A DNA stretch of 63,355 bases, the filler included, from Octopus bimaculoides (Eukaryota): assembly GCF_001194135.2 (NCBI RefSeq). It is 3 parts of 3 records of this genome, joined end to end, with 100 filler letters (N's around TTAATTAATTAA, not from the genome) between each part and the next. Parts side by side here need not be neighbours in the genome. Positions count along the whole stretch, not along the records: positions 49,464 to 63,355 come from NC_068983.1; 2 more parts are not named here. One strand, given 5' to 3'. The notes beneath the pieces are model-generated. The model was not told where the DNA came from and ran no database searches. It worked only from the letters and a program-made list of their open reading frames with translations. Positions 49,464 through 63,355 of the stretch are shown piece after piece. Position 1 is the first letter of the stretch. Every line of letters starts with the position of its first letter. The position numbers were made by a program, and so were the translations under genes.

Positions 49464-49583
49464 GAGCAGAATATTTGCTGTAGCCCATCTTTTTATACCA
49501 AGACAAAACAATGTACATGGTAACACTTCCAATCAATTAAGACCAGAAGCCATGAGAGCCACTGCCTGGTACTGTATCAGGGC

Positions 49584-49641
<58 letters not shown>

Positions 49642-49740
49642 TTATGTTTGAATTTTGCTTTACATTTCTATAAGTTGGCTTCAAGTCTCACCCAGAGACC
49701 TCAAGAGATAACAAGTTAGAAGTTCATGCTGGTGTTGTTA
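49464..49740 (-). mobile_element. Probable Dong-like 5' end (49464-49587) and a separate short 3' end (49641-49735), both set in (TAA)n
   Basis: Two non-repetitive blocks bounded by (TAA)n tracts, next to the R4/Dong RT fragment across the gap. Family assignment is from recall and context only. Confidence 0.4.
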
Positions 49741-49859
49741 TTATTATTATCATCATTATTATTATTCCATTACCAACATTAGAACACTAATAAATCTCTC
49801 CAATGTTTAAATATGTTTTCCATAAAAGAAAGTCATGTCAATATTCACTTATCTTATGA

Positions 49860-50030
49860 TGGCGGTGGTGAGCCGGCAGAATCGACTGGCAAAATGCGTA
49901 ACGACCTCTGAGTCCAAATTCCGCCAGGGTCGTCTTTGCCCTTTACTATTTTGGGGGTCAATAAAATAAGTACCAGTTGATGTAATCGACTTACCCTCTC
50001 CCCCCCAAATTGTTGGCCTTGTGCCAAAAT
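49860..50030 (+). mobile_element. SINE A
   Basis: Family A similarity. Confidence 0.75.
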
Positions 50031-50034
50031 CATC

Positions 50035-50330
50035 CTAAATTACCTACTCTTTCTCTCCCTCTTCCCATTCATAAAATCAATAACTTCCGTTTCTTATCTC
50101 TTTCCTTCTCTTCCCCTCCTTTCCTTCACCCTTGCCCTCCCTCCACTTCTCTTTCCCTCCTCCTCTCATCTCCCCCTCCTTTCGTCCTCCTTCCGCTCCT
50201 CCTATCGCTCTTTCTCTCTCCACCGCCTCACCGCTCTCTTTCTCCTTCGTCTCCTCCTGTCTCCCCTATAACCCCTCTTCTTTTCTTCCCTCTCTCTTCC
50301 CCCTCTCCCTTTCTCATCAATACCCTAAGC
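50035..50330. repeat. About 300-bp low-complexity polypyrimidine tract
   Basis: Almost pure C/T on the plus strand. Confidence 0.9.
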
Positions 50331-51218
50331 TCTAAGAGATTTATAACCTATTTATTCTAATGTCTTAATTAAACTAGGAAGGGAAGCTCCCGTGACCCCA
50401 TTTCAGCGTCTTCAAGCTCAGTGCAACTTAAGTAAGTAGTTAGGAAGGTAGAGAGGTTGCGAAGTTGTCCCCGCAACCCCCTTAACACTAACCCCCTCCA
50501 CCACCATTTCTCCAAGTCAAACCCTTTAATTCCGGGATCCATTCCTTTTAAATGGGATTATTTCCTTACTTCTGATCTTTACACTTAGATCCTTCGAGAT
50601 CCAACAGATTTATGATCAAAGACGTTCCAATCGTGATTGTCCTGTCTTTTTTTTTTTAGCAATATTTACGACTACATCATCTTATCTTTAATCTTTTATT
50701 TGTTTCAGTCATTTGACTGTGCCCATGCTGGGGCACCACATTGACGGGTTTTAGTCGAACAAATCGACCCCAGTTCTTATTTTTGAAAATCTAGTGCGTA
50801 TTCCATCGGCCTCTTTTGTCGAGCACCTAGCTTACAGAGTTGTAAACAAACCAGCGTCGGTTGTCAAGCGGTGGACACATACACACACACACACATTTGT
50901 CTACCGTGTCTTGCCTCCTCAACAATCAATAGGGTCGCAGGGGCGCGTCGTAACTTGTGGCAGGGTTTGGGCATCTCAGACGCCTCAAGGTCAACAGGTG
51001 ATTGTTTTCAAGAGAGAGAGAGAGAGAGAGATTGACCTCACCGGGATTCGATCTCAGACAGCCAGACCAAGTTCTGAAAACACTCTGTCCGATGCTCCAA
51101 CGACTCTGCCAGTTCAACAAATATGTATGTATGCATGCATGTATGTATGTATGTATTTGTGTATGTATGTATGTTTATGTGAGTGTGTGTGATTGAGTAT
51201 TTATGTATGCATGTATAA

Positions 51219-51265
<47 letters not shown>

Positions 51266-51558
51266 TCCTTATGTATATTGAGAGAGGGTGTGGTTTATTG
51301 GCCAGAGACTATTTCAGCCAATATTGACCAAGGACAGCTACTCAGTTATTTTCAAGCAGCTACAGACGATTTCAAGAGTCAATTACTCGAATTAACAGAG
51401 AAAATATTAGCATTTAGAAGATAATGCTCTTAGTTTAACTGCTTTGCACTTCCTGTCCCCAGCCTTGAACCTATTCACTTCTGGTGCGTATAGTCCGATC
51501 TGTCCACGAGGCCCTCAGCTTCTGTGCAGTTGCTGATATACTCCATTGAATTTATCCT

Positions 51559-51781
51559 TTAACCCTTTCAACCTGGAAATTTTTCTCAAGTCGGTAATGG
51601 CGGGTGGGCGGGTTTGTACGCATGCCTGCCTTTTGAGCTGTCATTATAGTGTCATACACCCCGATCATATGTCTAGCGCTCCATACTTATCAGAAAAACC
51701 GGAGCGGTACTATACTGCATCACATGACTCGTAAAATGTTTGACTCTTACAAATATGAAGCAGCCGGGCTGAAAGGGTTAA
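51559..51781. mobile_element. piggyBac-type MITE, 215 bp
   Basis: TTAA-CCCTTTCAACC ... GGCTGAAAGGG-TTAA (TIR match 10/11, TTAA TSD). Confidence 0.8.
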
Positions 51782-51944
51782 TGTTAATTACAGAAGCTGT
51801 TGTCAGACATGTGACATTTTCAGCTCCTGAAAAATTTAAGAACATAATCATAAAGACCATTCCCCCGCCCCCCTTTCCTTGTTGCTGAGAGGCTACAATC
51901 AGTGTCCGAGAAACTGGTTGGTGTTCTGTGACTTTATTTATTCC

Positions 51945-52145
51945 TAGTAGAACCTTTAGCGCGTCGAACAAAATGCTAAGCGACATTTCTTCTAGCTCTT
52001 TACGTTCAGAGTTCAAATTTCGCCGAGATCGACTTCGCATTTCATCCTTACGAAGTCGATAACAGTAAATCAGTCAAGTACAGAAGGTGCCGTAATCAAC
52101 TTGCTCCCTCCCCTCGGAATTATTGGCCTGGTATCAAATAAGAAA
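51945..52145 (+). mobile_element. SINE A
   Basis: Family A similarity. Confidence 0.75.
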
Positions 52146-52179
52146 GAATTTATTATCTATGCAGACATATATATATATT

Positions 52180-52402
52180 TTATTTCTTTGTTGCCCACTG
52201 AGGGCTAAACATAGAGGGGACAAACAATGACAGACAAAAGTATTAAGTCGATTACATCGACTCCAGTGCATAACTGGTACTTATTTAATTGACCCCGAAA
52301 GGATGAAAGGCAAAGTCGACCTCGGCGGAATTTGCACTCAGAACGCAAAGACAGACGAAATACTGCTAAGCATTTCGCTCGATGTGCTAACGATTCTGCC
52401 AA
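52180..52402 (-). mobile_element. SINE A, convergent with the previous copy
   Basis: Reverse complement of family A. Confidence 0.85.
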
Positions 52403-53319
52403 CTTGGATAAGTTTATAGTAGAAAGTGGGTTATACATCTTTAGATTGTATACCTGACTTTCCTACTATAATATTAAGGAATATAACGGAACGCTGAACT
52501 CCAGACTATCAACTTAAACGACATTTATTTAGGTGGTAAATATATACATCTTTAGTTCTTGTTGCTACAGCTTCTATTGTGTATGAGCATAGTTGTTGGG
52601 ACGTTGTTCTGTAGTTGTGAGCGAGCTGTCGAGTGTAAGTCCGAAAGATGTAGAAAGACAGCTTTAATACGTCCATGCTCAATCGCTGGCCAGCGAGAAA
52701 GAGAATGAATTGAGCGGGAACGCTTGGTTGTTTAATTCTACGCATGCGCACGGCGTTACTACAAGTTTGTATATCATGCGTAGAATCTTACGATTTTTGG
52801 ATCCACCCTGCAGGGGCGTGGCCAGGTTCTAAAGTTAGGAGTAGCAAGCTCATAAAAAAACCCAAAAGGCGTCGTGACACATATCAAACAATTTTAAACT
52901 CATTTCTCTTATATTATGCGAAATATTTTATTAGTCATAAAATACGTAATTGTCATATACATTCATTAATTTTATGTTTCGGTAACAATGTCATTATGTA
53001 TGAAGCTTACAACTACGGATCTAAGTGAGCAAAGCATTAAAAAGAAACGTTGAAAAGGCGCCAATTTTGAAAAATGTGCTTGTGGAGAGAGGTCGCTCCT
53101 TTTACTTCCTTATTAGCTACGTCGATGTCACCCTGTCCTTAAGACAATAAAAAAAATTCTCTCTCCCCCCCCCTCTCTCTCTCTCCTAAAACGCAACTTT
53201 CCTCTTCTCAGCAAGCCATACGAATTATCTGAAATCTTCACGATCTCAAATGTAATCCTTAACACTTCTTTTCGTAATATACAAACTACTGAAGCAAATT
53301 TATCAAAGTTTGTCTTTTG

Positions 53320-53537
53320 AAATTGGTTTCAAATTTTGGCCCAATGCCAGTAATTTCAGAGGAGGGCGTGAGTCGATTGCATCGACCCCCAGCGCTCAAC
53401 TGGTACTTATTTTATCGACCCCGAAAGGATGAAAAGCAAAGTGAACCCCAGCGGTATTTGAACTCAGAACGTAAGGACAGATGAAATGCCGCTAAGCATT
53501 TCGCCCGGCGTGCTAACGATTCTGCCAGCTCGCTACC
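53320..53537 (-). mobile_element. SINE A
   Basis: Reverse complement of family A. Confidence 0.85.
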
Positions 53538-54344
53538 CCTGTCTTTTGAAATATTAAGCATTAAAAGCTGGATCCTGTTAGAAAATATTAACAATCGAAA
53601 ATTCAAGGCGCAGCAGAAAAACCTCCCGTATTTTACACGGCCATTGGCGTGGCGCTAATAAAGTTTGGCAGAAGATAATAGTGTCTTCCTGTAGCTCATG
53701 TTTTACTGTTTATTTGTTTTGTTTTGTTTTTCTAGACCAGTGTCCACCATGCGGCTATCAAGAATAAAAATGTGGGAGGGTTTTATTTTATTCTATTTTT
53801 GCTGCACCCTACATGTGAAGTAAAGGTATTAGAGTCCAAACCCTCCTTATTATATTCATATTCACATCGTGGTTTTAGTATAAAAATAAAAAAGCCTGTC
53901 CCCCAATCATTTTCTTGTGGCGCCACCTATATTTTACACTGAATTACTGCCCTTTTGGTCTACAAAGCTTTCTACAATGAGTCACAACAATAAAGTTTCT
54001 TTTAATATCTTGCTCTTAACATAGATAATTTTTTGTTAAGATCAAATGAAATACTAGATGTTGGAAACCCACAGAATCCAAGGAGGAGGGCCGTTGAAGA
54101 ATATATTTTTCATATCTTCATATTGAAATTGATGCACAAGAAGAGTTTATTGCGGGTTTTCTCCAAGCTTAAAAGCAAGATTCACAGAAACAAATGTATT
54201 TACACTTAATCAGATTTCATCACTGAAAATTGAGGGCTCAGTTCATAGGTATGGGGTAATGCAGTTAACGAGAGATGAACTGTTGCTTCTCTTCTGCTAA
54301 GGATTGGGGACCACGGAAACATGCGCTCTCTCTCTCTCTCTCTT

Positions 54345-55140
54345 TCTCTCCGCTTCTGGTTATGGTTGTGTATTTTCAGTCAGGGGTCTTCCAGTCCACT
54401 CTTTGATGTTGTCCGGCTAATGTCTTCGCAGTTCTTTGGTTCCTTGTGTCCCATTGACTCTTCCTTCATGGATATCAGTGCTGAGATTCCGGGCCCAGAT
54501 GACATCCCTAAAATACTGCAGCTTTCTCTCCCTGGCAATTATCAAAAAATCCCCTTTCTGTTCCCATTTCCACAAGTACTAACTCCTTTGTTTGATAGTC
54601 AGTCCCGCTGATCTTCAGTATTCTTCGATAGTATGTTGTCTCAAATAATGAGTTTGGCAACGTTCTTTCAGGGCCCAGCTTTCACATCCATACAGTGCAA
54701 CGGGCCAAACTAGTGACTTCATAAGCTTTAATTTGATGTTCTTCTTAAAGCACAGTCATTTTATATTCTACTGAGGGATTTTTAAGACAGATCTCGCTGC
54801 CCTAAATCATGCTCCTATTTCGTAGCCTCCGTCTCTTGGTTGTTCTGTAATAGTATCCAGACATTTGAACTTGGTGACCCATTTAAATGTAACTCCTTGG
54901 CATTGAGTGTTATGTTCCTCTGTTTTTGTCACTGCGATCACTTTTGTCTTCATTGTATTGATTTCCAGCCGGTACTCACTCAATACAAATCTTTAACTCT
55001 ATACCTTATCTAATAATCTCTGTAGCGACTCTGCCGATGTTGTGATAAGGACTACATCATGAGCATACCATACGCTGTTGATGTCTCTACAATCGATGGT
55101 GATTCCTATCCCATTGAGATCATCAACTGATTCTTATCCC
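54345..55140 (-). mobile_element. Old RTE/BovB-like LINE relic
   Basis: INSVWYAHDVVLI..LQRLLDKV..LEINTMKTKVI..KFKCLD..KLKLMKSLVWPVALYGCESW..RKLQYF..DNIKEWTG, with many stops. Confidence 0.85.
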
Positions 55141-55159
55141 ATTTTCAGAGCAGAAGGAG

Positions 55160-55450
55160 TCATCGTCATCATCATCATCGTTTAACGTCCATTTTCCATG
55201 CTGGTATGGGTTGTACGGTTTGAGTGGGGACTGGCAAGCCAGGATGCCGCACCAGGCTCCAATCTGATGTGACAATGTTTCTGCAGCTGGATGCCCTTCC
55301 TAACGCCAACCACTCCGAGAGTGTAGTGGGTGCTTTTTACGTGCCACCGGTACAGGAGCCTGTTAGGCGGGCCTGGCATCGATCACGTACGGATGGTGCT
55401 TTTTACGTGCCACCGGCACGGGAGCCAGTCAGGGTGTACTGGCATCAGCC
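55160..55450 (-). mobile_element. 5'-truncated RTE 3' UTR copy with (GAT)n tail and two 66-bp units
   Basis: catcatc..gtttaacgtccattttccatgc tail on the plus strand; units start at 55329 and 55395. Confidence 0.8.
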
Positions 55451-55702
55451 GAAACGTTGTGATAACAACAAACAAGATGAGGACAAATATCCGTCCAACG
55501 TAAATAAAGTAAATAATGTTAATCCTTGACTTTCTTGTATCTTAGGGTGGTAGTGGGGAGAGGGGAATTTTTTGCTTTATTTTTAGTAGATATGGTTTCA
55601 TAAATACCAGTCATATACTAGAATTTATAGAAGAAATAATCTATATTCCCCACGGTTTCCACATATTTAGCTTATCTAATTAATTTGCGTTTCTCTTTCC
55701 AG

Positions 55703-55925
55703 ATGGATCGATTTTTATCAGCGAAGGGAGTGCATCCTGACCATGGAGGGAAATCTTTCACAATATGTGCAGATGGACAAGCTCACCTACGCCAATGTCT
55801 GCATCCAGAATGTAGTAAAAAGAACATTAATTTACCAAAATACATGTATAAGTTTTATGACCTGAGGAAAGAATTCAGGAAATTTTACAGAACTGAAGCT
55901 ACCGGAATCAAGTCAATGCTTGAAC
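55703..55925 (+). CDS. ESRP: Internal coding exon of an ESRP1/2 (fusilli) orthologue, N-terminal DnaQ/exonuclease-like domain
   Basis: Strong acceptor tttctctttccAG at 55701-55702. Open frame [74 protein letters not shown] closely matches human ESRP1 as I recall it ([42 protein letters not shown]). Phase 0 start, phase 1 end, 223 nt. Confidence 0.9.
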
Positions 55926-55934
55926 GTATCCTTT
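55926..55934 (+). promoter_or_regulatory. U12-type (minor spliceosome) 5' splice site GTATCCTTT
   Basis: The donor right after the ESRP exon reads C|GTATCCTTTG, a full match to the RTATCCTTT U12 consensus and a poor U2 donor. Confidence 0.8.
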
Positions 55935-56159
55935 GAATACAGCTTTTATGTTTTACCTTTTACACATTTCAGTCACTGGACTCTGGCCACGCTGGGGCAC
56001 TACCTTCAAGGCTTTAGTCAAACAAACCAACCCCCTGGATCTTTTTTTTTTAATCCTTGTACTTTTTCTATTGGTCTCTTTTGTTGAACTATTGAATTAC
56101 AAGGACGTAAACAAACCAACACTGGTTGTCAAGGGGTGGGCAAAGACAGACACATATAA

Positions 56160-56575
56160 CTGTCATCACCATCATAGTCATTTAACACCCGTTCTCCATG
56201 TTGGCCTCGGTTGGATGGTTTGACAAGTGCTAGCAAGGCCGGAACCTACATCAGGCTCCACTCCATTGGCTGTTTCAGAATGGTTTCTACAGTTGGATGC
56301 CCTTCCTAATGCCAACCACTTTACTGAATGTACTGAGTGCTTTTTACATGCCACCGGCACAAGAGCCAGTCAGGTGGCACTGGCATCAACCATGCTCGAA
56401 TGGGGCTTTTTACATGCCATCAGCACAGGTGCCAATCAGGTGGTACTGTCATCGGCCACGACAATGACTTCACTTGACTCAACAGGTCTTCACAAGCACA
56501 GTTTATTGCCCAATATATATAGCGTCGCCTTACTGGCACTTGTGCTGGTGGCATGTAAAAAAAAAACATTCGAGT

Positions 56576-56577
<2 letters not shown>
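56160..56577 (-). mobile_element. RTE 3' UTR copy with two 66-bp units and a short inverted fragment at 56531-56577
   Basis: Same tail; units start at about 56336 and 56402. Confidence 0.75.
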
Positions 56578-56614
<37 letters not shown>

Positions 56615-56782
56615 CTGTGTGGGTTAGGGGTTGAGAAACCAACAAAGGGATAGTACCTATCCAATATACTGCTGGTAGTGTACCCAGTTATTCATACTCA
56701 GGTACTAGCTATTTAGTGGCAAACTCGCAACTGAGTGTTATATATAGGTGGGGGTAAAAAGTAATTTACCCTTGATTTATAC

Positions 56783-57289
56783 GGCAAATAAAAAAATGGA
56801 GGGGATACAAAAACTACATTCATCAGCCGGTAAACATTCCAATATGTCTATTTATTGCAGTGTATTAGATAAATCCACACACATGTATTAGTGGTACAGA
56901 CTATCAAATAGAAAGGTTTGGTAATTGCCAAACCAAGGGTGTGGATGCATATAATCATATAGAAACAAGTGATTAATTGAGTAAATGAGTAAATGAGTAA
57001 ATGAACAGATTGTCAGTAAAACAGGAACTAGGACCTACACACCCATTTGGTTTTACTGGCAATCTGTTCATTTACTCATTTGCTCATTTACTCAATTAAT
57101 CACTTGTTTCTATATGATTATATGCTTCCACACCCTTGTTTTTGCAATTACCAAACTTTTCTATTTGATAGTCTGTACCACTAATACATGTGTGTGGATT
57201 CATCTAATACACTGCAATAAATAGACATATTGGAATGTCTACCGGCTGATGTCTGTTGATTTAGTTTCCTCTCCACTTTCTTATTTGCC
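56783..57289. mobile_element. Near-perfect palindromic MITE (about 240-bp arms, 27-nt spacer), TA-flanked
   Basis: Core 56821-57022 versus 57050-57251 has 8 mismatches in 202 nt; internal (GAGTAAAT)3 motifs. Confidence 0.9.
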
Positions 57290-58123
57290 TATATATATAT
57301 ACATATATATATACACACACACATACACACACAATACAAGCTTCCATATTGTTTTCATCTACTAAATTCACTTGCAGAGCATTGGTTGGCCTGGGGCTAC
57401 AGTAGAAGATACTTGCCTAAGGTGCAGTGCAGTGGGACTGAACCCAAAACCACATGGTTGCAGTGCTAGAGATAACACTAGATCAACGACTGATATTTTA
57501 ATCATTTCAATATGTACAAGAGACAACTCTGCACATGTTCTGTTATTATTAAACCTCATCAGTGAAGTATTCACTTCACTATACATACTGAAGTAGTGAC
57601 AAGAGAATCACTAAGGAAATAATACAGGTTTGAGTGTAATGGAGTAGGTGTAAACAATTATCATAATTTATATATGACATCGCTAAAATCAGAGCTGCTG
57701 ATTGGCTGAGTGGAGTGCATTCATAGAACATTGACGTACTTCTGGGAGATGACATTTTAGTTATGTTTTATTTATTTCTTACTCATTGCTTTCGCTGGTA
57801 ACAATCCTTCCTTTTATGTAGTTGTCATGTGACTATCGTCATGTGATTAGGTTGGTAAGCATGACACAGAATTCTAGTGACAGTTATTATTAATTAGCAG
57901 CAGGACCTGATTTTGCCAGGGTTTATTAATACTTGAAGTAATTACAATCATGTGAATTCACTGTGTTTTAGAGAATAAATTATTTTTAAAAGATGTTGAC
58001 AATCTTTGCCTGGCCTGAGAAATATTGCAGATTTATTCAGAATTCTAGCATCCAAGAAATCCTTTTGATTCTTATTTTTATTGGAAGCATTAGTAATATA
58101 TTCTATGATGTATGTGTATATGA

Positions 58124-58165
<42 letters not shown>

Positions 58166-58242
58166 ACTTGTGTGTGTGTATATCTATATATATACACATA
58201 TGAAGGAGCCTTATGGAGGCAAAGTGGCTGAGTTCCTTTTGA

Positions 58243-58404
58243 GTGTTGGACCTCATGGAGGCAATGACCAAGACCTTTATGTCGTGCTTGAGAAGAAGAC
58301 CCATCAAGCCGATCAAAATCAAAGTCATGGCAGATACTGGTGTCATGCAAATGGCACCTGTGCCAGTGGCACATAATAATACCTTCCAAGAGTTGGGCCT
58401 CACG
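58243..58404 (+). mobile_element. Oppositely oriented RTE 3'-end pieces next to the main copy
   Basis: Sense-strand RTE terminal sequence ttggacctcatggaggcaatgacc..gtgccagtggcac, and a second copy of the gggcctcacggaggc motif. Confidence 0.6.
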
Positions 58405-59708
58405 GAGGCCCAACGTTTGAAGGTCAAGTGAGGCCCAACGTTCGAAGGTCATGCTTGACCACCTCATCCCATATCATCCTGGGTCTTCCTCTACCCCGGA
58501 CTCCTTCAACTGATTGGGAGTGGCACTTCTTCACACATCTCTCCACATTCATCCCATAGTTCTTGATCATACCAACACAAACATCTCTCTTGCATGCCGC
58601 ATCCAATGCTTCATATGTCCAACATTTCTCTCAGGGCGCTTACACTCTGTTGTGTGTGCACACTGACATTACACATCCAGCGGATCATGCTAGCTTCATT
58701 TCTTTCGAGGCTACACATGTCTTCAGCAGTCACAGCCCATGTTCACTGCCATGAAGCATGGCAGTTCACGCACATGCATCGTACAGTCTACCTTTCACTC
58801 TGAGCGAGAGGCCCTTTGTCACCAGTAGGGGTAGAAGTTTTCTGAACTTTGCCCAGGCTAGTCTTATTCTAGTGGTAACACTCTCTGAGCATCCACCCCC
58901 ACTACATACTTGGTCACCTAGGTAGCAGAAGCTATAAACTACTGCTAGTTTCTCCCCCTGGCATGTGATGGAATCTGTCTTCAGAGCACCTGTGGTGTTT
59001 ATTGCCCCTGTGCATCTGCTGCACACAAAAGCTATCTTCCCAGTTAATTTTCCTTTGATGTTGCTGCACCTCTTATGTCTCCATAGCATACACTGGGTAC
59101 ATCTTATGGAGTTTCTACCTACACCTTTTCTACAGATCGAGCAGGACCACCTACCTGAAGGCGTGTGTGATGTGTTCGCCTTCCTACTTACTAGAATTTT
59201 GGTCTTTGCTACATTGACTCTAAGGCCTTTGATTCTAAACCTTACTTCCACACCTCAAATTTCTTCTCTAGTTCTGTTAGTGATTCTGTTTTTAGGGCCA
59301 GGTCATCAGCATATAGAAGCACCCAGGGGCAACCCATCTTGAATTCCTCTGTTATTACCTGGAGGATTATAATGAATAAAAAGGGACTGAGGGCTGATCT
59401 TTGGTGGACCCCTACTTCTACCCGGAATTCTTCACTATACTCATTGCTGATCCTAACCTTACTAACAGCCACTCTGTATAGGGCTTGTACAGCCCTTATT
59501 AACCATTTGTCTATTCCCAGTTTCTGCATCACCCACCAGATAAGGGATCAGGGGACCCTGTCAAAGGCTTTCTCCAAGTCCACAAAATTTAAGTATAGGG
59601 GTTTATCAGTAGCTAGGTATTTCTCCTGCAGTTGTCGAACCAGGAATATAGCATCAGTGGTGCTTCTACTTGGCACAAAACCGAACTGCATCTCATCTAA
59701 GCAGATTC
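58405..59708 (-). mobile_element. RTE/BovB-clade LINE (RT to 3' coding end) with embedded PHD finger
   Basis: LDEMQFGFVPSRSTTDAIF..FVDLEKAFDRVP..GVHQRSALSPFLF..LLYADDL..GLRVNVAKTK..[C4HC3]..FCYLGD..RGRGRPRMIWDEVV; several frameshifts. Confidence 0.95.
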
Positions 59709-59940
59709 TTGAGTATAACCAGCCGAAATTGCGAAGATAATCTGAAACTCGACTGAGGAAAGAAAACTCTGAATGACCCGTCCTTGTTTTCTTTGTATCG
59801 TCTATCTGGAGGTTTTGTTGTCCCTTTTTTGTGTCACCTAACTGTCTGGATGTTTTGTGTTCTTGTCCCATTTTGTATTTATATATGTATATATANNNNN
59901 NNNNNNNNNNNNNNNNNNNNNNNNNNNNNNNNNNNNNNNN

Positions 59941-59988
<48 letters not shown>

Positions 59989-60089
59989 TATTATTTATCA
60001 CTTATATATGGATATGGTTTATATCTGCTGGACAATGATGCAACAGACATGATAAAATACAGCTACTTAAGATAAAACAGAGGTGGCAG

Positions 60090-60250
60090 CAAGCTGATTG
60101 CATCAACCCCAGTATTTGACTGGTACTGTATTTTATTGACCCCTCAAAAGAATAGAAGACAAATTTGACCTGAATTCAGAATGGAAACAGTCAGAGGGAA
60201 TGCTGCTAAGCATTTAATTGGATGCATTCATGGTTCTGCCGGCTCCCTAC
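60090..60250 (-). mobile_element. SINE A, degenerate
   Basis: Reverse complement of family A. Confidence 0.6.
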
Positions 60251-60649
60251 TTTTATATTCCCTCAATTATGGTCTTACCAAATAATATTCAAATGCCTCT
60301 ACAATATTTATGTTTCTGTTAATTGTGTCATTGAAATTTTGTTAATTATTGCCTATTATTAATTTGTTAATTAATGAGAGAGAGGGAGAGAGAAATCAGG
60401 AAAATATTTTAGGAATTTCCTTTTGTCAATATTTTGATAGTAAAACATCTGACTGTGTACCGTGTCACACTACAGAGTCATGGTTTGTGAGTTTGGCTGT
60501 AGATGTTCCTATATATCTCTTGACAAGAAACTTACCGTTAATTGTAGCATATAAATTGACTATGTATACAAATTGATTTTATATACATACATACAAGCAC
60601 ATACACACACACACTCACATGTAAGATTTAGTAGTTGACAAAATAATTC

Positions 60650-61025
60650 AAAACAAGAGCACTCAGAGAGCGCAAACCTCCACCATGGCAACACCAACGT
60701 CCTCTCAATGATTATCCAGAGATGATTTTTAAAATGAGAATATCTGAAATAAACTCGACTGCTCTCACAAACGAGAATACTAAAAATGAACCCGACCACT
60801 CTCAAAAATTAAGTAAAAAAAAAACGGAAAAATAATCCAGAATCCTTGTCTGGTATTAGATCCTAAAATCTAATCAGCTTGTGCCAGTCAAGGCCAAACA
60901 TCCCTGAAAGTTTCATCCAAATCCATCCAACGGTTCTTGAGATATCTTGTCCACAGACAAACAAACACAACTGAAAACAACACCCCCTCCTTCACACTAA
61001 GGTGAAGGTAATACTTCCTGTTGAG
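60650..61025 (+). mobile_element. Non-autonomous DNA element (aacaagag...ttcatccaaatcc...acagacaaac type)
   Basis: Motifs typical of molluscan Helentron/Kolobok-like non-autonomous repeats (recalled); a related sequence lies on the minus strand at about 11805-12080. Confidence 0.35.
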
Positions 61026-61199
61026 AACGGAAAGGAATCTAAAGAGAAGACACAAGCTTTGTCTCTTAGTGATTTCCTTTGGCAAGGCACGCCATATGTT
61101 TGGCAGTGAGCAAGGCACAGCATCTGTTTAGCATGATCCATTATATCTATGAAGTATATTTCTAGATCCTGGTTTTTATTAATATTCTCAAGATCTAAT

Positions 61200-61415
61200 G
61201 GTGGCGAGCTGGCAGAATCAGTGGCATGCCAGACAAAATGCTTTGCAGCATTTCGTCCATCTTTTCGTTCTGAGTTCAAATTCTACCACGGTCAACTTTG
61301 CCTTTCATCCTTTTGGGGTCAAATAAAATAAGTACCAACTGAGCACTGTGGTTAATATAATCGACTCCCCCCCACTACCACTCCCCTGAAATTGCTGGCC
61401 TTGTGTCAAAATTTG
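61200..61415 (+). mobile_element. SINE A
   Basis: Family A similarity. Confidence 0.85.
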
Positions 61416-62311
61416 AAAAAAAAAATTGGAATTAACAAGATCTGAAACAAGATCTGAATTCAACAATTTTCTTGGAAGAAACTAACAGCTTGAAATCCTT
61501 TATGGGACATTATTTCTGAAATGGGTGCAAGGCAGGATTTCAAGCGACTTCAAGGGATCAAATTCTAATTTGTCTTTTTTGGCTGACATCAAAAAGACAT
61601 AGAAGTGGGTGCTGAAGGGTTGTTGAAAGGTGACAGATGTTTTATAGAAACTCCCTTGTTGCTTGTTCTAATTAGGTTTTACTCTTGTAAGAATATTTCG
61701 TATGAGGCAACGCATCATTATTAGATCATCACAACCAAAGCAAGGGGATATTTTCCAAGTTAATTCCATTATGCAACCTTAGAAGTTTTCTATTATGTAA
61801 ACAGAACTGTCTATCAATCTGATCATTTCTTTTATATTTTGTAATCTTTCTAATGGATTATATCACCATTTGACAACTTCATGTTAAGAAATCACTTCAT
61901 GTTGAGAAAATACATTTTTCGTTTCGTGACTTCATATTTCTTATGAACAAGGAAACAACAAAAGCAAATCAAGTTAATTCTGCTGATAAGAAAACAAATT
62001 CTCAGGTATTTCGAGCACTCCCGTAAAAGTTTGAATAAGTTCTTTTGGTTGTGTTCAAGTTTGTAAAAGTGCTTCTAACTCCCAGGTACTTATTTCCTAA
62101 ACTATTCACCATATCCGCCAGAGTAATATGAGGTACAGTACACGGCTTTTCAAGATCAATATGGCATTTGAAATGCTGTATGTCATATATACATACATAC
62201 AAACATTATATACAGTACATAATTACATACATTATATACAACAACAAAATTTAATCAAATAAATTTGACAAATGATTCTAATTACTAAAAGAATAGTTTA
62301 TTTATTGATAT

Positions 62312-63030
62312 CAGTGGTTCCTAACCATTTCTTTTATTTATGGGCCTCTTTGACTTCTATTTATCTTGGGCAAACCCTCATTGACATTCATCATCATCAT
62401 CATCATCATCGTCGTTTAATGTCCATTTTCCATGCTGGCATGGATTGGACAGTGTGACTGAGGTCTGGAGAGCCAGCAGCTACACCAGGCTCCAATCTGA
62501 TCTGGAAGGGTTTCTACAGCTGGATGCCCTTCCTAACGCCAACCACTCTGAGAATGTAGTGGGTGCTTTTTATGTGCCACTGGCACAGGGGCCAGTCAGG
62601 TGGGCGTGGCATCGATCACATTCGGGTAGTGATTTTTTCATGTCACCAGCATGGGAGCCAGTCAGGAGGTGCTGGCATCAGCCATGTTCACATGGTGCTT
62701 TTCACGTGCCACCAGCATGGGAGCCAGTCAGGAGGTACTGGCATTGGTCACGTTCGGATAATGCTTTTTATGTGCTGCCAGCACAGGAGCCAGTCACGGG
62801 GTACTGGCATCACCATGTTCGGATGGTGCTTTTTACGTGCCACTAGCATGGAAGTTTAAAAAATCCTTTTTTGCTTTTATAATTAAATATCAGGCATTTG
62901 TATAAAAGAAAATTGTTAAAATATTTTGTGTATTGTAGGAGTATAACTAGTTCATTGCAGATAAATCTTAACGACAAAATCTTATGTGACCCCTTAAAGG
63001 GCCATATGGACCCCAGTTGAGAATCCCTCG
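62312..63030. mobile_element. Possible hAT-type MITE carrying the nested RTE tail
   Basis: CAGTGGTTCCTAAC at 62312 and a degenerate GTTGAGAATCCCTC at 63016; no clear TSD. Confidence 0.35.
62387..62852 (-). mobile_element. RTE 3' UTR copy with four and a bit 66-bp units
   Basis: Units start at 62562, 62628, 62694, 62760 and 62825; (CAT)n at 62387-62410. Confidence 0.85.
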
Positions 63031-63319
63031 TTTATAACTTGACAAAACAATATTTTACGTAAAAGTCCTCTTTTAGTTCCCACACACACTAATGGTGTTG
63101 GCACTTACATCACTCTCTCTCACACCCACACTTAATTGCCATCTGTATGCGTGTGTGTGTGTGTGTGCTTGTAGTGTTCACTTGAATCCCCACCCCCTAC
63201 CAACATGGGACTCATTTTCAATAATAGGAACCAAGAAAGTGTTTTAGCAAATAATTTGGTCTGTTTTAAACTGCTTTAAATTTCCTGGAAGTTTATTGTG
63301 TTTGATGGAATTTGAGACC

Positions 63320-63355
<36 letters not shown>

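Follow-up and report, generated by a model that had tools for sequence, protein, structure and literature searches.

Genes with U12-type introns include ESRP1 in both human and mouse (PMC6239176, PMC8850803). Human ESRP1 was also part of a study of twintrons, which described a U12 variant of 742 aa and a U2 variant of 206 aa and gave the U12 intron as ancestral for each of its 18 cases (PMC3564746). Zrsr1/2 mutant mouse embryos show changes in the expression or intron retention of U12 genes, Esrp1 being among those named (PMC7312986). The minor introns of Octopus sinensis were compared with those of human in a pan-eukaryotic survey, which reported a relative enrichment in molluscs (PMC10639083). 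In the literature, we found no paper that singles out the minor intron of ESRP/fusilli in invertebrates and nothing relevant on ESRP2 in connection with U12. The initial annotation of the DNA analyzed here had named both human ESRP1 and ESRP2 as minor-intron genes. For ESRP1 this is borne out by published work (PMC6239176, PMC8850803, PMC3564746), while for ESRP2 a U12 intron was seen in an ESRP2-like gene of turkey.

Here we describe the intron of the Octopus bimaculoides gene, which was detected in a joined stretch of 63,355 nucleotides (the window). The segment at 55703-55925 is very probably an ESRP exon, and the intron that follows it a GT-AG intron of the U12 type with a length of 19.5 kb, inherited and orthologous to the minor intron of vertebrate ESRP1. 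On the vertebrate side, the intron was read in a bird ESRP1 gene, in the turkey ESRP2-like gene and in a sturgeon ESRP gene. The octopus and the vertebrate ESRP1 introns share the gene family, the codon position (after M-x-E/D of the N-terminal domain) and phase 1. Position and phase, by which orthology was judged, agree between octopus SMLE/H and bird ESRP1 AMTE/Y (here and below, a slash within a sequence marks the splice junction), the genomic sequence of the bird being T/GTATCCTTTC. Both belong to the GT-AG subtype, their donor being N/GTATCCTTT and their branch site lying 10-14 nt before the AG. The gene models of bat, monitor lizard, catshark and darter (P0009, P0008, P0015, P0033) end with ECIL or ERIL. 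For human ESRP1, we infer the position of the U12 intron from the bird genomic DNA and from the bat gene model, which ends MTECIL.

The genes also show differences. The octopus intron, at 19.5 kb, is much longer than that of the bird (7.3 kb) or the sturgeon (235 nt), and the codon at the junction is His (C/AT) in octopus and Tyr (T/AT) in vertebrates. Furthermore, vertebrates carry an extra intron at SKK/N (3395/5843 in the bird locus L004 and 16664/17153 in the sturgeon locus L008), whereas this segment is a single exon in octopus, in the mussel-like contigs and in the annelid.

Identification of the ESRP exon

The piece of the window from 49464 to 63355 aligns at 100% to the ESRP locus of O. 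bimaculoides (L009 15064-28955). This locus was taken from GCA_001194135.2 (CM046603.1, 5,087,155-5,161,139), and its coordinates equal the window coordinates minus 34,400. The coding exon of 223 nt lies on the plus strand at 55703-55925, starts in phase 0 and ends in phase 1. Its translation gives 74 residues and the first base (C) of a His codon. Frame 1 over 55703-55936 reads 77 protein letters ending with SMLERIL before a stop codon, while the other two frames are closed.

A protein search with the 74 residues of the exon gave no more than three matches, all of them short read-through ORFs. With the full-length ESRP of Mytilus (P0134) as query, an ESRP1-like protein of Argonauta hians was found, whose 90% cluster includes the annotated ESRP1 of O. 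bimaculoides, O. sinensis and O. vulgaris. The exon peptide corresponds to residues 92-165 of the annotated O. bimaculoides ESRP1 with 100% identity (P0408/P0411/P0412), so the assignment to an octopus ESRP exon made in the initial annotation is supported both by this match and by the alignment of the whole piece to the locus. Two residues differ from ESRP1 of O. sinensis and O. vulgaris. Identity is 68-76% to mollusc-like homologues and 64% to residues 101-145 of human ESRP1. When the ESRP protein is mapped onto the O. bimaculoides locus, the segment is the third coding exon.

The exon is part of the N-terminal exonuclease-like domain of ESRP, upstream of the RRMs. In a direct Pfam scan the 74-aa exon alone gave no domain match, and the mussel-like homologue P0021 gave a sub-threshold match to RNase_T only (E 0.008). 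The RRM-coding exons are located 3' of the exon in L009, and the families RRM_11 and RRM_1 are recorded for the gene product. The gene has the arrangement typical of the ESRP/fusilli family, an N-terminal exonuclease-like domain followed by three RRMs.

One may ask whether the segment is a pseudo-exon outside the functional transcript, or whether another donor is used. We consider this extremely improbable. The exon is joined at exactly the same point in two annotations of O. bimaculoides, in the RefSeq annotation of O. sinensis, in O. vulgaris and in Argonauta, and its frame stays open with 68-76% amino-acid identity in other molluscs.

The U12-type donor and read-through into the intron

The exon end and the donor read GAA C/GTATCCTTTG, with the donor bases at 55926-55935. 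The U12-type 5' splice site GTATCCTTT (55926-55934, plus strand) matches the RTATCCTTT consensus in 9/9 positions, which confirms the full match claimed in the initial annotation. Equally, its prediction that a retained intron would read ERIL and then stop holds in the translation, where SMLERIL is followed by an in-frame TGA at 55934-55936 (plus strand). This stop codon is met only upon intron retention. It lies 9 nt into the intron, which is the usual consequence of retaining any intron.

RTATCCTTT was found once in the 13.9-kb source when both strands were scanned. In shuffled sequence the mean was 0.42 matches, and a single occurrence somewhere in the piece is unremarkable because 33 of 100 shuffles contained at least one match as well. 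This leaves room for the idea that the donor resembles the U12 consensus by chance and that the intron, which ends GT-AG, is removed by the major (U2-dependent) spliceosome. The signal that argues against chance is a different one: the donor stands exactly where the homology to spliced ESRP proteins ends, and the intronic positions +1 to +9 are conserved across phyla. In addition, the exon end AAC followed by GTATCC would make a poor U1 site. The weight of the acceptor side and of other animals in this question is described below.

Two further motifs in the gene were examined and judged to be coincidental. A second GTATCCTT at L009 51480 lies away from any exon edge. Six bases into the upstream intron, ATCCTTTT (GAG/GTTTGCATCCTTTT, L009 1117-1130) looks like the tail of a U12 donor, but out of register; no U12 donor is formed, and the acceptor of that intron is of the U2 type.

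The distant acceptor and its branch site

The window covers the first 7,430 nt of the intron, from 55926 to 63355 (plus strand), and a further 12,041 nt follow outside the piece. Downstream of the exon, the window contains no exact TCCTTAAC, the sole exact match being located upstream at 53256. Allowing one mismatch, TCCTTRAY gave 10 matches in the window, which is the level expected by chance, and none of them is followed by an ESRP-like frame. A tblastn search of the window with ESRP proteins of human, a mussel-like mollusc, an annelid and others did not find the next ESRP exon, its sole match being the exon already known. Motif searches and tblastn are thus in agreement with the earlier statement that no branch point with a matching exon follows in the window.

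The acceptor was found in the public locus, 19,471 nt downstream and outside the window. The intron spans L009 21526-40996, is 19,471 nt long and of the GT-AG type, which is well above the lower limit of 7.4 kb that had been proposed. The branch site TACTTAAC is located at L009 40980-40987 and matches the core TCCTTAAC in 7/8 positions, so an exact-match search for the core would miss it even with the whole gene at hand. Its branch A lies 10 nt from the 3' AG (L009 40995-40996), and the interval tgtcattag contains no pyrimidine tract. The acceptor reads gattttACTTAACtgtcattag/AT, and the sequence before the next coding segment is tctttttttattttctgaaagattttacttaactgtcattag/ATTTGGGACTG. This segment, LGLKPDQSVEYGVHQCQEMASILHRMVTSG, begins at L009 40999. 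Joining C to AT gives a His codon and restores the frame to HLGLKPDQSVEYG (SMLE/HLGLKPDQ). This agrees exactly with the proteins annotated for O. bimaculoides, O. sinensis, O. vulgaris and Argonauta hians (including P0408, P0405 and P0297).

The features found are an RTATCCTTT donor, a TCCTTRAY-like branch site within about 8-20 nt of the 3' splice site, a stretch from branch site to AG that is free of a polypyrimidine tract, and GT-AG ends with a restored frame. Judged by sequence, the intron shows every property by which a U12-type intron is recognized. Removal by the U2-dependent spliceosome finds a point in its favor in the T-rich tract upstream of the branch site. It is countered by the branch site itself, which stands at a U12-typical distance, and by an AG that has no adjoining pyrimidine tract. 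Taken with the conserved donor 9-mer, we regard a chance donor and U2-type removal as very improbable.

The T-rich tract and the AG that follows it (tttttttattttctgaaag, L009 40957-40968) precede the U12 3' splice site by about 29 nt. By analogy with human ESRP1, they could represent a cryptic U2-type acceptor, as in a twintron.

For the inherited U12-type intron, the following course of splicing is proposed. U11 snRNP would recognize GTATCCTTT at 55926, and U12 snRNP would pair with TACTTAAC, which precedes the distant 3' AG by 10 nt. Splicing would then join C to AT to form the His codon (SMLE/HLGL). From the motifs and from what is established about the minor spliceosome, full-length ESRP with its three RRMs is expected to need this machinery with its U11, U12, U4atac and U6atac snRNPs. 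An unspliced transcript would stop after ERIL. It could yield a short N-terminal fragment, but is more likely to be a substrate for decay; nonsense-mediated decay is probable because this stop lies upstream of many exon junctions. Use of the junction is suggested by public gene models and by transcript-like contigs of other molluscs. The evidence goes no further than constitutive, inherited minor splicing.

Orthologous introns in other animals

The donor 9-mer GTATCCTTT was found at the same codon position and in the same phase in seven further loci (L001, L002, L003, L004, L005, L007 and L008). Three of these are short mollusc-like genomic contigs with the same exon, in which the donor is the visible part of the intron. 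They read GAC T/GTATCCTTTC (L001) and GAT T/GTATCCTTTT (L002 and L003), and the latter two resemble mussel. Mussel proteins and transcript-like contigs (P0021, P0134) read SMLD/YLGLQEDHSVEYG (SMLD/YLGL) where the genomic sequence is T/GTATCCTTTT. The donor is therefore taken to be used in mussel.

For the other loci, the intron could be compared with that of O. bimaculoides (GAA C/GTATCCTTTG, branch TACTTAAC, 10 nt to the AG, L009 21526-40996) at both ends. In the annelid Paralvinella palmiformis (L005 9106-10312), GAT T/GTATCCTTTT is combined with the branch site TTTCCTTAAC at 12 nt (cag/TT). Bird ESRP1 (Buphagus, L004 5961-13265) has GAA T/GTATCCTTTC and the branch site GACTTAAC at 13 nt (aag/AT). 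The turkey ESRP2-like gene (L007 1511-2270) reads GAA T/GTATCCTTTT with TTCTATAAT at 12 nt, and the sturgeon ESRP gene (L008 17277-17511) reads GAA T/GTATCCTTTG with TTCTTTAAC at 14 nt. The lophotrochozoan introns, namely those of Paralvinella, the mussel- and mollusc-like contigs and the Batillaria model, are like that of octopus, with the same boundaries on both sides and the donor GTATCCTTT. Paralvinella has a textbook TTTCCTTAAC branch site and differs in its intron length of 1.2 kb, compared to 19.5 kb in octopus.

An exhaustive search gave 85 cluster representatives that reach the exon end. CIL or RIL, the read-through by which the same donor was recognized, follows in 56 of them, and three continue with CI or RI and another residue. 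Among the remaining representatives, 11 fit GTAAG/GTGAG/GTAAT donors, 13 are spliced or other, and two stop at the boundary.

The rotifer Adineta ricciae and Daphnia magna serve as contrast cases. Their ESRP/fusilli genes have an intron at the octopus position and in phase 1, but of the U2 type, with GTAAGA/GTAAGT donors and long polypyrimidine tracts. The rotifer intron (L006 1670-1811) reads GAA A/GTAAGACT at the donor and tttcttttgtttag/AA at the acceptor, and the Daphnia intron (L010, near 5796 and 10190) reads AAC T/GTAAGTTA and ttttttttttcag/AT. A U12 branch site is absent at both acceptors. Lineages with a true U2-type intron at this site thus look different from octopus, which speaks further against U2-dependent removal of the octopus intron.

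Conversion of U12-type to U2-type introns is far commoner than the reverse. The rotifer and Daphnia introns are apparent conversions of this kind, Daphnia being the one representative of the ecdysozoans in the comparison. The simplest reading of the sequences is that the U12 intron was present in the bilaterian ancestor, persisted in molluscs, annelids and both types of vertebrate paralogue, and was converted to the U2 type in some lineages. The occurrence of the intron in a mollusc, an annelid and vertebrates supports bilaterian ancestry. In bird ESRP1, annelid, turkey and sturgeon it lies at the same codon and in phase 1, and the earlier proposal of an ancestral bilaterian U12 intron kept in a cephalopod agrees well with this distribution.

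Several public ESRP models read through the donor and end there. They come from lizard, bat, shark, a teleost and the gastropod Batillaria (among P0008, P0009, P0015, P0033, P0144 and P0030). The annelid ESRP model skips most of the exon, and the models P0030 and P0144 are truncated or mis-spliced at the U12 intron.

Flanking intron and repeats

Upstream of the exon, the piece contains the last 6,239 nt of a U2-type intron (49464-55702, plus strand), which has a full length of 20,186 nt (L009 1117-21302). Its acceptor consists of a polypyrimidine tract and AG (tttctctttccag, 55690-55702), and its donor in L009 reads GAG/GTTTGC. The acceptor position matches in L001, L002 and L003.

About 860 nt inside the U12 intron, a foldback (MITE-like) inverted repeat is located at 56783-57289. 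It has 240-nt arms with 93% complementarity and a 27-nt loop, was also seen as a match to its own reverse complement, and in the pre-mRNA would fold into a long hairpin. The intron also contains a degenerate retroelement remnant on the minus strand (58766-59988) with reverse-transcriptase fragments and an ORF with a PHD-like zinc finger. In the Pfam scan, RVT_1 was matched with E-values of 1.7e-5 and 1.9e-6, neither match reaching the curated cut-off, and PHD with 1.4e-5. The remnant is interrupted by an assembly gap of 45 N (about 59896-59940).

An interspersed repeat of about 290 nt occurs on both sides of the exon (55160-55450 and 62394-62683), the copies being 83-86% identical. It recurs across the ESRP locus (L009 34264-34543, 55325-55531 and 56737-56945). 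The repeat copy near 62562-62851 has internal tandem subrepeats of 66 and 132 nt. Rfam and tRNA scans found no non-coding RNA in the piece.

Implications for ESRP expression

It was considered whether the U12 intron is a regulated, rate-limiting step, so that retention in certain tissues or stages tunes the dose of ESRP or gives a protein lacking the RRMs. Conservation of the intron type at the nucleotide level extends over mollusc, annelid and both types of vertebrate paralogue, and retention would truncate the protein at once. Inefficient U12 splicing has been argued to regulate host genes (PMC4615840, PMC4066798). In mouse embryos mutant for Zrsr1/2, Esrp1 is one of the U12 genes affected (PMC7312986), and the alternative U2 variant of human ESRP1 leads to the 206-aa product (PMC3564746). 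Against this, the replacement by a U2-type intron in the rotifer and Daphnia implies that the U12 status is dispensable in some lineages, and neutral processes may explain much of the evolution of minor introns (PMC10639083). Furthermore, almost every intron would bring in an early stop codon when retained, and a coupling of dose to minor-spliceosome activity, as suggested in the initial annotation, would apply equally to any gene with a minor intron. On balance, we regard such a regulated step as unlikely. The accompanying suggestion that epithelial splicing programmes would thereby follow the activity of the minor spliceosome is likewise a tentative one.

A more specific form of this idea treats the 19.5-kb ESRP U12 intron of cephalopods as a regulated bottleneck, where variable minor-spliceosome activity or, as in the human twintron, a competing U2 event would set the ESRP levels. 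This appears distinctly unlikely. It is equally doubtful that ESRP levels would in turn set epithelial alternative-splicing programmes, with retention producing an NMD target or a short protein lacking the RRMs.

For the constitutively spliced, inherited U12 intron, which we prefer, the finding is less novel than the initial annotation implied: the junction already appears in public annotations of Octopus, and its vertebrate orthologue is a known minor intron. The octopus ESRP intron is probably also contained in genome-wide catalogues of minor introns. As an ordinary inherited U12 intron, it has little significance beyond confirmation. It nevertheless provides a neat case for studying how minor introns are conserved and converted, and since annotation pipelines often fail at this intron, the site is a useful check for them. 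According to the comparison, the ESRP minor intron dates back at least to the bilaterian ancestor. A regulatory role, if real, would connect epithelial splicing programmes with the minor spliceosome.
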